Origin: Thalia democratica
Lineage: Eukaryota
Reading direction: 5' to 3'
Assembly (NCBI GenBank): GCA_965202585.1
Contig: OZ241826.1
Coordinates: 25,854,001-25,918,000 of the forward strand
DNA: 64,000 nt
A model generated the notes under the pieces. The model had not been told where the DNA came from and searched no databases. It worked only from the letters and a program-made list of their open reading frames with translations. A program made the translations under genes and the position numbers. Below, one piece after another: positions 41,556-46,600 of this stretch. Numbering within the stretch: position 1 is the stretch's first letter; each line of letters begins with the position of its first letter.

Positions 41556-43434
41556 CAGTATTGTGATAAGTTACAGTTTTTTATGTATTATTTTTCAATA
41601 GTTAGTTAGATGTATAAAGTTACAAACACGTACACAAAATTAGTTTTGGAAGCAGCGTGGTATTTTTGTAAGTACACCAACATGATAATAAACTTTATTA
41701 GGTAATGTGTAACAACAAAAGTAAAACTGTAACGTTTTATAACTGATCAAAAAAGGTTTAAAAGATTGAGAAACGTTTGGAAAGTATGCAGCTAGTTTAG
41801 CGCAGTATTTGTAGCTAAAAAAAACTCAAATTATTTATTTTAAAATTAACAAAACTTTGATATTTTTTATATTTTATTTGATCATATTGTCGCTAACTAG
41901 TTCGAAAATTAAGATCAAAAGGTTAAAATCCGCATTTTTACCCACACATTAATATATATCTTACATTACTAACTTTCCTACAGTTTTTCAAGAATGTTAT
42001 TAAAATTTTAATAAAAAAGTTGAGTATAGTGTAACTTTTATTTTTATTTTTTGTAAAAGTTAAAATAGTTACATTATAAAACCAAATATTGATAACGACA
42101 ATCATTGTTTGATAAAAGCTTTACATTTACTAAACGGTGAATTAAAGTTATACTTTTAGTATTATACAGCTAAAAACATTTAACAATGACTAATATTAAC
42201 ATTTGTCGAGATCAATTTTTGTGTCATGTTTTATGTTAAACATTTCACACCAAGATTAAAAGGAAAAATAGCTTTTTTAAGCCAACATACACTTTAAACT
42301 ATCTTTTAAATACAATCAATCATTTATGTAGGATTAGAAAGTCATAAATTTTGAGTTTTATTTCCTATTTAAGTCATGCATCACTCAAAGCAAATCAAAT
42401 CCATCATTTTTCAACAAAATTTTGGTTTTACACTCTTCATATTATTAAGATTTCTATATTTGAAATGTGATGTAATGTGTTTTCAATTGAAGTTCATGAC
42501 TTGTTAAACTTAATTAGTAAAAGTTTTACTTTAACCATTTTTCTATTACTATTGATTTTTTATACCATTTAAAAAAACTAGCTATTACTGTTTTTTTTTT
42601 CGGAGGTCAAGTTTTACCACTATTATATCAAAAAAACATTTAGATCTTAACTGTCAAAATATTTAGATTTTAACAGTCAAAGTTATGGGACAATTTATTT
42701 CAAATAGTTCAATTTTTACTATGCATTGTAACATCAAGTTTCATTCCAACTTAAAAAATAAATAAGATCTGTGGTTTTTTTTTTGGTTTGTTCAAATAGA
42801 ATTATATTAATTTCGAGAATTATGTGTATAGGCTTGTAGTGAGTTTGCTTAACTTCTGTGAAAATTTCGGCGTAAAAAAACTCTCATATTTGTCCTTTAT
42901 TTACTAGCAAATGTCTGAATTAAAGTTTATTAACTTTTTACAGCTTTGATACTTTAAAGCTTTTATTTTTAATTCAAAAGCATTAATTTACCCTAAGTTT
43001 GAAATACGATAACGAGAGATTAAAGTTTGAGAGATTTAAAAGATTAAAAAGTTGCTGATGCTTTAGTTTTTATCTTGTTGCTGTGTTGCTGCAACCCGCT
43101 AGATTAGAATACGTCATAAAGAAACCGAAAATTCGTCCAGTTTAACCGGTGCAAAAAATATTCGATAGAAATATTTTTAACCGAAATCTATCTTTTCTGT
43201 GTGAACTTTAAAAAACTAGATTTAATCTAATGAGATTAAATTCTGTTATCAATTTTTAGACAAGTTTTAATCTTAATTGCTGACTTTTATATTTATGGAT
43301 TTAATTATGACATAATTGTTTTAAGTCGCCAACTTAATCAAACATTTAGTGTTCGTGATATAACAAACTTTTATGAAAAGTTTTTACTTTATTTCCAAAT
43401 AATATTGTGTTTTAAGTTTATTCTTATTTGTTGC

Positions 43435-43674
43435 AATCAACAAAATCGGCAAAAGTCTGCAGAACAAGTCCGGACTTTCGTTTGCCGTGAGACAAGCTCA
43501 AATTTAACAAAAGGGTTGATCATGCCAATTCGATCATCAGACCACAAGTTTCGGTAGACTGAGACCGGTTTCGTCCTTATTAGGACTCATCAGTCAGTCA
43601 CAACCGAAAAAATTGTAGTCGTCAATCTACAAACGGTTTATCATGCTTTCACATGAAGCAACCATTTCAACAAT
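43435..43674 (-). mobile_element. Short hammerhead-carrying retro-insertion (Penelope-like element fragment or non-LTR retrozyme-type unit)
   Basis: Flanked by the 14-bp direct repeat TTCTTATTTGTTGC (43421-43434 and 43675-43688). The paralogous site in copy C (~55905-55930, ...TTGTTGTTGCGGTTTTTGCC) is empty. There is no ORF and no poly(A) tail. The family assignment is inferred from the ribozyme type. Confidence 0.75.
43549..43609 (-). ncRNA. Minimal type I hammerhead ribozyme
   Basis: Minus strand: UUUCGGU-UGU-GACUGA-CUGAUGA-GUCC-UAAUAA-GGAC-GAAA-CCGG-UC^-UCAGUC-U-ACCGAAA. It has a perfect core (CUGAUGA, GAAA, GUC triplet), a 6-bp stem I plus a 7-bp extension, a 4-bp stem II and a palindromic ACCGGU stem III. 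Predicted cleavage is between 43563 and 43562. Confidence 0.88.
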
Positions 43675-46600
43675 TTCTTATTTGTTGCGGTTTTCAAAAA
43701 CACTAGCTAGTAAAATATACTTCTTTTTAATAGTTGTTTACCCAGGTTAATAAAAATAAACACATAAACTATCTTTGATACATTTCTGATATCTAAAATT
43801 ATATACCTTTACGTACTTTAGCACTTTTTAGTTCCTAAATCGCTTAACATCAACTTTTGATAACTCAAAATACACAACTTATTGTTATTAATAACTTGAT
43901 GATATTCGTTTCTTTACTATAATTTCAAAAAAAAAAAAAAAAAATGTTGATTAAATGATAAAAATTTTGAAGTAGTTTAGAGATTAATTTAAGTTTCTTA
44001 AGTTTTTGTAATTGCTACAGTCTCGTAAACACCTGTTAGCTGTTTGACAACTTCAAGGTTTTAATTAACAAGTTACCATGTTACCTTTAATTTAAAGTAG
44101 TGTTATGATGTTAGAATGTGGAACTTTAAACTTGCGTAATTGTAAAGAAGTCCTTTTGAAGTAATCAGTTTTGTGGAAAAAGAATTTTAGTAGATGTTAT
44201 ACGTTGAACAATTCTTTTTTTTTTATATTCTAAAAACAATCTAGAACTTTTCTTAAAGTTTGAACCTTAAGTAAATCTGCTTTAAATGAAAATTAAATAA
44301 AAAAAAACATTCTTTTTTGTTTTCTAGATGACAAAACAATACATAATTCTATATTTTCACTTATTGATTTTCACCATACAAAAGCAAATTCTAGATAGAA
44401 ATTTTTTAAAATATAAAGTACACCAATCAACCGCATAGACACTAGCAACTTAAGTGACCAAAACACAAAGTATTAAATTAGTTCACCAACAGTTGAACTT
44501 AGACCAACGCTACAAACAATGTAACAAAAACGTTTCGTTAGTGATATTTAACAAAATAACAGAGTATTTTCATTCAGCTATTGTTTGATGTTGCCGACCT
44601 TGATAACCGTTCCAAAACAAAGCATTACTGGTGTAATTAAACAGCGAATTATTACGTAAAAATTCGTTTGAACTTAATTTTTCTTAAATTCCTTAAAACT
44701 ACTCACGTGGTAAGTTTTTCAATATCACATGTTCTAATTTACCAATTGCTTTTACGTGATTGGACTATTAAGATTAATCCGCTATTGTAATTGGATAGAT
44801 CTAAGGACAATCAAGTGGTTGTTTTCAAAGGGACATTTAAAAAAGTATTTGAAAAAGCGTTTTTTATTCTTAATTCAATATCCGTACTAGTTTGTCTAGA
44901 TTACTTTTTTGCATAACCTTCTTTAAGTGTTGCATATTTTTCAATTTACAACCAACGGTTTTAAATTATGCTTGTAATAAATCTATAGTTATTAGAAGTT
45001 GTAAACATAAAAGCTAATTTAGTACCTGCATATGACATCATATTTATTTTTGCTAAAGTTAGTACTAAAAATTCGCGTCTGTTATAAAATTAGGTTATTT
45101 TGTCGGATTAGTCTGGAATTTTAACAGAAAGTCTGACCAAATTTACTTTCAATAGTGCACTTTGAAAAAATACTACGAGATTATTTGTCGCAAATTGTAA
45201 TAGTAGGTCTGTAGTAGTAATATGCTGAATACTATTTAAGTTGTAGTTTTTAAAACAAGTTGCTTTTAGTATAAAAATATATTTTTTTTTAGTTTACTAA
45301 AATACTTTGAATACATAAATCCCCAAGGCATACTTAAAATAAAAAAATGGAATAAAAGTATTTTAAATAGAATTTAATTTTTACGTTTAATATCAAATGT
45401 GGTATAAAACACGAAGAAAAAACATTGCTATTCTGATAATGATATTAAGAACAAGTATAAAACAGAATTGTGTAAGTAGAAGTTTATACTGTCAACGAGA
45501 ATACAATAACTTTTACATATTTAAACTCTGATCAAAACGTATACACGTTTAATTCTTTGCGGTTCAAAACTTCACAACATTGAATAAGATTTTTGCGTGA
45601 CAAAATATTTTAAAACTACATTTACCATGTTTTGAATTTTGTAAACTCAGATTTAAAAAAAACCTCTTTCGAGAAGGCTTATAGTTAGTTTAAATAAGGA
45701 TTGTACCATAAATGTAGTTATTATTGAAGCTGTCTACTTTTATAAAACCTTAAACTCATTGCCATCTGTAAGAGACAACACTCTAAAACCATTATTACGT
45801 AACATTACTGCAGATGAGTGCTTGTGTGAAGATCACTCGACACAGTCTGTTTAAAAAAAAAATTTTTTGCGTTATAAATTAGCTTTTTTTTTTTTTTTTT
45901 TATTTAGATAAAAGCAATTTTTTTATCATTTATTGGACTTTTTTTTAACTAAACTAAGTTATCTCTATCACAAAAAACTTCCATATAACTTTTGTAAAAT
46001 GATTTTCATTAACGTGTTTTTACTTAAACTACAAAGAAAGGAAGATGTTTAACAGTGTTGTTGAAAGGAAAGAAAATGTGTGTTGATAACGTCATAAATA
46101 AAATGTCTTTCTTGGAAATGTTGGCGTGCGTTGGTGTTGTAATTGCGAGGAAACTTTTTAATTATTCGTTTAAAAATACCAACGCATGTGTTACGTTTCC
46201 AAAAAAGTACTTTAAAACATAATATAACATATGTTTTATTAAGGTCACCAAAAAAAAATACTAGTTAAAGTTTAGACATGATTTTAGTTATGATTGTATA
46301 ATCATAAGTGTATAAACTAAAAACAATATAACTGACTTTTTCTTTTTATTATACTTTTTAATCTACTTTAAAAATCAATGACGTGATAAAGAAACTAATG
46401 GTTTAGAAAGCTTTGAAAAGCCGCTTTCTTACCTATTTGACATGTTTATTACTTGACAACCTCTAAAAATTCAACATTGCAGGTAATTTACAAGATATTT
46501 TTTCAGTTTATACGAAGTATTTCATTATTACGAAGTTTTCAAAATTTCATTCTTTACAGATGTGACTTATGTACTTCTGTTTAATAAAGCATAAAGTCTT

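Follow-up and report, generated by a model that had tools for sequence, protein, structure and literature searches.

What is the sequence of about 240 bp that interrupts this region of the Thalia democratica genome, and how did it get there? An initial annotation had proposed that it is a recently mobilised, non-autonomous retroelement built around a self-cleaving hammerhead ribozyme, and possibly a representative of an undescribed family. Here we examine the locus within the whole stretch of 64,000 nucleotides in which it lies (the window), compare it with related copies across the genome, and ask which machinery could have inserted it.

The insertion and its hammerhead ribozyme

The 240-bp insert spans positions 43435-43674 and is bounded by exact 14-bp direct repeats. 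Its features are given below, with unit positions counted from u1, the first nucleotide past the predicted ribozyme cut, on a 328-nt reference unit (L028:973-1300:-).

43421-43434: left 14-bp target-site duplication, TTCTTATTTGTTGC (exact repeat)
43435-43562, minus strand: unit u129 to u1, the 3' part of the inserted copy, with a 3' end of the 'outer' class (99.2% identity to L028:973-1300:-)
43541-43611, minus strand: type I hammerhead with outer helix I, internal loop, 5-bp stem II and loop-less palindromic stem III, ACCGGU (HH9 38.8 bits, E 1.6e-8, and structural scan)
43563-43667, minus strand: unit u328 to u224, the 5'-truncated, ribozyme-bearing part (98.1% identity to the reference unit)
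43668-43674, minus strand: 7-nt filler, ATTGTTG in the sense direction, joining the point of 5' truncation to the right target duplication (matches 0 of 36 sampled units)
43675-43688: right 14-bp target-site duplication (exact repeat)

The insertion is recent and real, and the flanking repeats are the target-site duplication that they had been taken for. The sequence TTCTTATTTGTTGC has no third occurrence in the window even at one mismatch (0.11 matches expected by chance), and it is single-copy at each of two clean empty sites elsewhere in the genome, one on contig C417, with flanks 87-91% identical, and one in a paralogue at C1:26.04 Mb (loci L048 and L052). The empty site originally described inside the window could not be reproduced: no 36-mer across the site was found even with three mismatches, and the window's own paralogues, alignable to ~43412 and then again from ~43876 at 60-78% identity (65-74% in most blocks), are too diverged. 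In the surroundings of the insert, no remnant of a gene was recognised that would correspond to the decayed host pseudogene invoked at the outset.

Hammerhead ribozymes are recognised by the core CUGANGA ... GAAA, a nucleotide other than G at the cleavage site, the type I order and three helices. The minus strand at 43611-43541 gives a full-model match to Rfam Hammerhead_HH9 (38.8 bits, E 1.6e-8 on 401 nt), and the residues of a type I core (CUGAUGA, GAA, A15.1/U16.1 and C17) can be read in it directly. Stem I comprises 6 bp and a 5-bp outer helix, stem II is 5 bp long, and stem III is ACCGGU without a loop. Together with a structural scan that finds this hammerhead and none besides in the window, the match and the core residues identify a genuine type I hammerhead on the minus strand, as first reported. 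The predicted cut falls after the C at 43563, between 43563 and 43562 on the minus strand, in agreement with the 5' end at 43562 that had been predicted. The suggested comparison with Rfam models succeeded in part: the HH9 score lies below the curated gathering score of 52 bits, so that the match surfaces only with E-value reporting, and gathering thresholds give zero matches across the whole window. We attribute this deficit to the deleted loop of stem III; other hammerheads in the same genome exceed the Hammerhead_1 threshold (38.5 and 38.1 versus 34). Between two ribozyme families stem I covaries (GACUGA/UCAGUC versus CCUGC/GUAGG), and the core and ACCGGU are conserved.

Stem III is also of the dimer-requiring kind originally proposed, because a loop-less ACCGGU can form only between two ribozymes, and dimeric cleavage has been reported for hammerheads with a short palindromic stem III (PMC6765202). 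In folding calculations the monomer has a non-catalytic fold (-23.7 kcal/mol) that is more stable than the catalytic fold lacking stem III (-18.4 kcal/mol), and a dimer is estimated to be roughly as stable as two misfolded monomers, which leaves activity undecided by energy. For the window copy, efficient cleavage is predicted to require a partner ribozyme from a second transcript, and with a single ribozyme and a partner-dependent stem III this copy cannot release a circle.

A 328-nt retrozyme family

The initial annotation treated the insert as a unit of ~240 bp; it is instead 0.71 of a 328-nt unit, consisting of u224-328 and u1-129 (233 nt) plus the 7 filler bases, with u130-u223 missing. 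Compared with individual copies rather than with an element consensus, it shows 3 differences over 233 positions (98.7% identity), and its ribozyme core and stems are unchanged, in keeping with the proposal of a recently mobilised, non-autonomous unit. The insert is structured, as had been noted (fold of -71.9 kcal/mol, z -4.2), and the RNA of the full unit folds at -107.5 kcal/mol (z -5.2). The reported lack of coding capacity and poly(A) likewise stands: open reading frames in the insert are at chance level only (at most 50 aa), a poly(A) or simple-repeat tail is absent, and neither the window copy nor the sampled arrays carry an A-run at the 3' end.

Across the genome, the family is large and young. 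An exact 43-mer from the ribozyme (43557-43599) occurs 629 times, as against 0 for a control, and a genome search returned 2131 first-look candidates, 129 of them scored matches, with a tandem spacing of 328 bp. The insert therefore has hundreds to thousands of relatives, target-duplication-flanked ones among them, and the claim of mobility is sustained. The checks that the initial annotation had proposed gave a high copy number and tandem arrays, but no link to Penelope reading frames: tblastn with the protein of PLE-1, a Penelope-like element resident in this genome, found no Penelope ORF in 30 sampled retrozyme loci, all of which are built of 328-nt units alone. This protein has no match in the window either. 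Family members form short arrays of up to ~5 units, and insertions usually consist of two inverted arms with variable 5' ends. The sampled insertions are the best matches to the query and so a non-random sample; in 20 of them other than the window copy, the 5' ends vary and the 3' ends fall into two fixed classes, u52-71 or u124-136, ~70 nt apart. In every one of the 15 two-armed insertions, the 3' ends of the two arms belong to different classes, an outcome that independent arms would give with a probability of 3e-5. Target duplications across the sampled insertions measure 10-17 bp, mostly 13-15, and microhomology of 1-4 nt is often present at the 3' end. Units diverge by 0.9-1.2 nt inside one insertion versus 2.55 nt between insertions. 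Metatranscriptome contigs carry full-unit sequence, for which carry-over of high-copy DNA is a possible source, the contigs being without RNA ends, circles or strand.

These properties place the insert in a kind of element described in 2020, contrary to the suggestion that it might represent something undescribed. Animal non-LTR retrozymes are tandem repeats of 150-450 bp with type I hammerheads and longer target duplications (Cervera and de la Pena 2020, PMC7229834); they have no LTR, PBS, PPT or ORF, are low in GC, make duplications of more than 4 bp and give rise to unit-length linear and circular RNA (PMC7229834). The Thalia family resembles them in its one type I hammerhead per unit, a 328-bp unit within that size range, short tandem arrays, the lack of an ORF, LTR, primer-binding site or polypurine tract, a GC content of 43% (below 45-50%), duplications above 4 bp, a highly self-paired unit RNA and coexistence with autonomous Penelope-like elements. 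The window copy differs from them in being a solo 0.71-unit fragment with a single ribozyme. The ribozyme itself joins canonical stems I and II, with an HH9-like internal loop, to the loop-less palindromic stem III, and a dimer-type stem III of this sort is reported for amphibian retrozymes and Penelope elements, not for most invertebrate retrozymes. Newt satellite 2 and schistosome Sm-alpha are similar by description as hammerhead-bearing repeats of roughly 330 bp, and in the newt the ribozyme, whose stem III is weak, works as a dimer (PMC7229834, PMC6765202); those repeats are described as satellites or SINE-like, whereas in Thalia every short array was inserted separately and has a duplication of its own. 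We conclude that the insert is very probably an animal non-LTR retrozyme: a single-arm copy, truncated at its 5' end and dead on arrival, from a non-coding retroelement family with 328-nt units.

Insertion scars shared with a Penelope-like element

The same genome contains PLE-1, a young and abundant autonomous Penelope-like element, whose reverse transcriptase is recognised by motifs only (Pfam reported no RT domain in PLE-1, and no solved structure matched it by sequence). Its target duplications are 13-14 bp in 5 of 5 insertions, and its two-armed insertions, with inverted arms and a one-sided tail, each pair an inner with an outer 3' end at a distance of 60-68 nt (4 of 4). A single-arm PLE-1 copy, L054, has a filler of ~10 nt at its 5' junction, comparable to the 7 nt of the window copy. 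Inverted, 5'-truncated copies and a one-sided tail are marks of Penelope insertion (PMC8557442), and a link between animal retrozymes and Penelope has been argued before (10.64898/2026.07.22.740005). Based on the scars common to the retrozyme and PLE-1, which uphold the Penelope connection made at the outset, we consider it most likely that the retrozyme is mobilised by Penelope-type machinery.

Penelope-like elements with a C-terminal GIY-YIG endonuclease (PMC8557442, PMC6765202) resemble the retrozyme in their insertions, which show 5' truncation, partial tandems, a neighbouring inverted copy that is 5'-truncated as well and an extension confined to one end, and in a hammerhead with a short palindromic stem III. 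The duplication length of the family is that of the resident PLE-1. There are also differences: neither the insert nor its family has an RT or endonuclease ORF, and the one-sided extension is ~70 nt here as against the 30-40 bp described. Retrozyme insertions behave like Penelope-type insertions, but are not themselves autonomous Penelope-like elements. Since PLE-1 has neither a hammerhead nor similarity to the unit, the link between the two rests on shared insertion scars, not on homology.

Hammerheads whose stem III is short and palindromic are found in the terminal repeats of canonical Penelope elements (PMC6765202), and the insert might accordingly be a terminal-repeat (pLTR) fragment of an autonomous, hammerhead-bearing Penelope-like element instead of belonging to a separate non-autonomous family. 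We regard this as very unlikely, given that all 30 sampled loci consist solely of 328-nt units without a Penelope ORF by tblastn, and that none of 17 Penelope loci from three lineages (12 GIY-YIG loci of 3.2 kb and 5 of 10 kb) has a hammerhead within reach in searches with Rfam models (E up to 0.01 for the 10-kb and up to 0.1 for the 3.2-kb loci) and regular expressions. A permissive structural scan of L055, one full-length PLE-1 copy, detected no hammerhead, and the unit and PLE-1 are not similar at the DNA level; a sensitive DNA comparison with the 17 Penelope loci yielded only a single decayed, core-less fragment, in L053, 3.5 kb from an ORF.

Duplications of 13-15 bp, 5' truncation and inversions also occur in L1-type elements, which would fit a SINE-like element moved not by a Penelope-like element but by a LINE, through an apurinic-type endonuclease, target-primed reverse transcription and twin priming. 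LINE-dependent SINEs are marked by an A-rich or simple-repeat 3' tail, or by a LINE-derived 3' end. A poly(A) or simple-repeat tail is absent here, and the two classes of 3' end, separated by ~70 nt and each represented once in 15 of 15 insertions, match the one-sided tail of PLE-1 (4 of 4). The duplications, compared with those of PLE-1, are of the same length; a LINE-driven origin is unlikely on these grounds. At the DNA level, a piece of a satellite-like repeat could have been captured in double-strand-break repair or moved by recombination, as the tandem arrays of the family and the 7-nt filler at one junction might suggest. Such an event is extremely improbable, because the 14-bp duplication is precise, the corresponding empty site is clean, and duplication length and 3'-end classes recur in 20 independent dispersed insertions.

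A proposed route of mobilisation

For a retrozyme mobilised by Penelope-type machinery, we propose a model in which tandem units would be transcribed and paired hammerheads, dimerised via the palindromic stem III, would excise 328-nt monomers. Monomers or uncut multimers may then be copied by the reverse transcriptase of a Penelope-like element, whose GIY-YIG endonuclease would make nicks staggered by ~13-15 bp. Synthesis of cDNA would start at one of two fixed internal template sites (~u60 or ~u130), rather than at the ribozyme cut, and extend for a variable length, often round several units. At the window locus, synthesis would have proceeded from ~u129 across the ribozyme and halted at u224, after which the 5' end would have been joined via the 7 filler bases, leaving the 14-bp duplication. 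More tentatively, a hammerhead-less active Penelope-like element may mobilise an unrelated hammerhead retrozyme in trans, both starting cDNA at two fixed sites ~60-70 nt apart, one per inverted arm; we put this forward as a possibility about which we remain doubtful.

A U-rich motif is found at all four 3' ends of the two elements (CC, then (A)UUUU, then A(U)UU), and is only suggestive in a genome of 26% GC. We rejected a stable hairpin between the two 3' initiation sites of the retrozyme and of PLE-1, where the sequence folds locally no more stably than when shuffled (z -0.09 and +1.31). A hammerhead-bearing autonomous partner was sought among the 17 Penelope loci, and none was found.

Taken alone, the window copy is ordinary and inert, left behind by a very active repeat family. 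Its importance is mainly for annotation, where it should be entered as a repeat and neither as a gene nor as an element of a new class. More is to be gained from the family, which extends the link between retrozymes and Penelope, previously based on co-occurrence and on terminal-repeat homology in vertebrates, to an invertebrate and brings a different line of evidence to it in the form of shared scars: 13-15-bp duplications, inverted arms and paired 3' ends 60-70 nt apart. The one-of-each regularity of the 3' ends also provides a concrete handle on how Penelope-type integration makes tandem and inverted structures. If mobilisation in trans is correct, the one-sided 'tail' and inverted arms of Penelope elements would represent the interval between two initiation sites, and the 328-nt family would be a small, high-copy natural system for dissecting the mechanism.

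The insertion and its empty sites

The 240-bp segment at 43435-43674 of the window, which carries a hammerhead on the minus strand, is a true insertion. An exact 14-mer, TTCTTATTTGTTGC, lies on both sides of it (43421-43434 and 43675-43688) and has no other occurrence in the window (chance expectation, 0.11 matches), so that the direct repeat described in the initial annotation is exact and unique there. The annotation also placed an empty site in a paralogous copy within the window; the empty site is real, but its placement is not. Alignments of the window's paralogous blocks end near 43412 and restart near 43876 at 60-78% identity (most 65-74%), a divergence too great for an empty site to be recognized. 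Empty sites instead occur on contig C417, with flanks 87-91% identical, and in a paralogue at C1:26.04 Mb; both sequences are continuous through the site and carry the 14-mer once. The C417 stretch (L048, G000:C417:779-4089, aligned with window 42438-44396) is from an unplaced contig, and a DNA run of the species contains a C417-like contig at single-copy depth. C417 could be a diverged allele, the insertion then being polymorphic, or a recent paralogue. The surrounding sequence belongs to the non-coding part of a block that is duplicated in tandem many times over about 300 kb, with 60-78% non-coding identity among copies; neither a gene nor a pseudogene could be recognized where the element inserted.

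Copies of the duplicated block
Window 10.3-11.3 kb, 31-33 kb, 43.1-44.3 kb and 55.6-57.4 kb
Contig G000:C1, 25.78-26.06 Mb

A truncated unit with a single ribozyme

Searching the genome with the insert gave 129 scored matches out of 2131 first-look candidates, which share 97-99% identity across the first 233 bases and are often spaced 328 bp apart. The additional copies and tandem arrays that the annotation had proposed looking for are therefore present, and its element of about 240 bp is instead a piece of a 328-nt unit. On a reference array copy (L028:973-1300, minus strand, from the same genome), numbered from the first base past the ribozyme cut, the insert comprises u224-328 followed by u1-129; u130-223 are missing, and it is therefore a solo 5'-truncated copy. 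Seven bases at 43668-43674 match no copy among 36 sampled units, and three other positions differ from these units, all outside the ribozyme core and stems.

As initially annotated, the insert contains a type I hammerhead: minus-strand 43611-43541 aligns to the full Rfam HH9 model (38.8 bits, E 1.6e-8 in 401 nt searched), and its core and stems can be read directly. The score falls under the curated gathering score of 52 bits because the stem III loop is deleted, and Rfam at gathering thresholds returns no match in the whole window. A structural scan of the 64 kb finds this hammerhead alone.

Features of the insert
Outer helix (direct reading): UUCGG/CCGAA plus internal loop
Stem I (direct reading): GACUGA/UCAGUC
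Core (direct reading): CUGAUGA
Stem II (direct reading): GUCCU/AGGAC, loop AAUA
3' side (direct reading): GAA, then ACCGGU, then cleavage-site C
43563/43562, minus strand: predicted cut
43651: difference common to three of 36 units
43612: difference private to the window copy
43451: difference private to the window copy

In monomer folding, the catalytic structure without stem III (-18.4 kcal/mol) is less stable than a non-catalytic one (-23.7 kcal/mol); an intermolecular ACCGGU duplex is computed at about -10 kcal/mol. With a single ribozyme and the non-catalytic fold favored, the window copy alone should cleave poorly and is predicted to be unable to release a circle.

The retrozyme family and its relatives

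Exact copies of the 43-nt ribozyme number 629 across the genome, the reversed control having 0, and a rough first look yielded about 33,500 HH9-like candidates. The unit is GC-rich relative to its flanks (43% vs 25%), and its RNA has a predicted fold of -107.5 kcal/mol (z -5.2). We surveyed 20 insertions besides the window's: array length ranges from 0.5 to about 5 units, 5' ends vary, and the majority consist of two inverted arms that adjoin at their 5' ends. Two classes of 3' end occur, u52-71 and u124-136, and 15 of 15 two-armed insertions have one of each (chance 3e-5 assuming independent arms). Flanking duplications of 10-17 bp, mostly 13-15, frequently share 1-4 nt of microhomology with the end of the element. 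The insertion mechanism duplicates 13-15 bp, starts at fixed internal 3' positions and stops at variable points on the 5' side. No Penelope ORF was found in the sampled loci. Units differ by 0.9-1.2 nt inside one insertion versus 2.55 nt between insertions, which fits one template per insertion event, though the test is weak since the family is so young.

Because the 3' ends lie away from the ribozyme cut and each insertion builds its array anew, the reverse-transcription templates would be uncut multimers or unit circles. The hammerheads probably work pairwise, joined by the palindromic stem III, a mode reported for the ribozymes of Penelope elements and amphibian retrozymes (PMC6765202, PMC7229834). 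The unit is found in marine metagenomes, fish-gut samples and several metatranscriptome runs. RNA-library contigs carry full-unit sequence, with loose ends running on into u130 onwards and u223 backwards, and none contains the window flanks; this putative expression may reflect DNA carry-over at such repeat abundance, as the contigs show no ends.

A second hammerhead family keeps the core, stem II and ACCGGU and replaces stem I with CCUGC/GUAGG, which is covariation; two members pass the Hammerhead_1 gathering score of 34 (38.5 and 38.1), and some are paired, inverted or tandem, about 330-390 nt apart. Pairs of inverted hammerheads, minus strand first, also recur at a spacing of exactly 129 nt, and may be segmental-duplication copies of one short two-armed insertion or reflect a preferred arm length. 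L072:1008-1084 is a variant of the window hammerhead with a 3-bp stem III and 6-nt loop (ACC GAAUAA GGU) and G12 changed to A, which may be a relic of a monomer-competent ancestor of the loop-less form. A decayed unit relative (L053:1231-1337, minus strand; 83-87% identity over u250-301 and u8-47, ribozyme core deleted) indicates older activity of the lineage.

Related hammerhead loci in the genome
Second family: L061:967-1038
Second family: L062:1081-1151 and 1404-1470
Second family: L067:1040-1111 and 1429-1500
Second family: L068:1010-1075
Inverted 129-nt pairs: G000:C1:7203432-7203603, 7212576-7212747 and 8849618-8849789

Every tested defining feature of animal non-LTR retrozymes (PMC7229834) is present at the family level. 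The family is thus of an already described kind, and not the undescribed one that the annotation considered.

A probable Penelope-like partner

GIY-YIG frames are numerous in the genome, often as inverted pairs. Their commonest lineage, PLE-1 (about 3.37 kb; copy identity 92-99%, mostly 96-99%), is young and abundant, with a C-terminal GIY-YIG; its RT is recognizable through DKG and YIDD motifs only, and Pfam reports no RT domain. In L053, a PLE-1 ORF precedes the decayed unit relative by 3.5 kb, and both have the same orientation.

PLE-1 copies
L055:2680-6046 (G000:C1:2655679-2659045)
Further copies in L053, L054, L056 and L057

Canonical endonuclease-bearing Penelope elements are reported to carry a hammerhead in their terminal repeats. 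In PLE-1, Rfam finds none, and neither does a permissive structural scan of one full-length copy (L055) with settings that detect the window ribozyme; PLE-1 also shows no similarity to the unit. Twelve further GIY-YIG loci of three lineages likewise lack a hammerhead. The Penelope link raised by the annotation therefore holds for insertion scars and not for homology. Duplications measure 13 or 14 bp in five PLE-1 insertions; in 4/4 two-armed insertions one arm stops at an inner site while its partner extends 60-68 nt beyond; and one copy with a single arm carries about 10 nt of filler at the 5' junction. Retrozyme insertions bear matching marks, and so does the window copy, with its single arm, outer 3' end, 14-bp duplication and 7 nt of filler. 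These marks agree with those described for Penelope elements (PMC8557442), which include 5' truncation, partial tandem copies, a neighboring copy in inverted orientation and a tail on one side only. For vertebrates, co-occurrence and terminal-repeat homology have been put forward in favor of a retrozyme-Penelope link (10.64898/2026.07.22.740005). Here, we infer a Penelope-like partner from shared scars, since PLE-1 lacks both a hammerhead and similarity to the unit; a hammerhead-bearing Penelope lineage akin to the unit may exist. The novelty at the family level is modest, and lies in the strict rule that the two arms of an insertion take different 3' ends, about 70 nt from each other, a rule common to the retrozyme and a hammerhead-less autonomous Penelope-like element.
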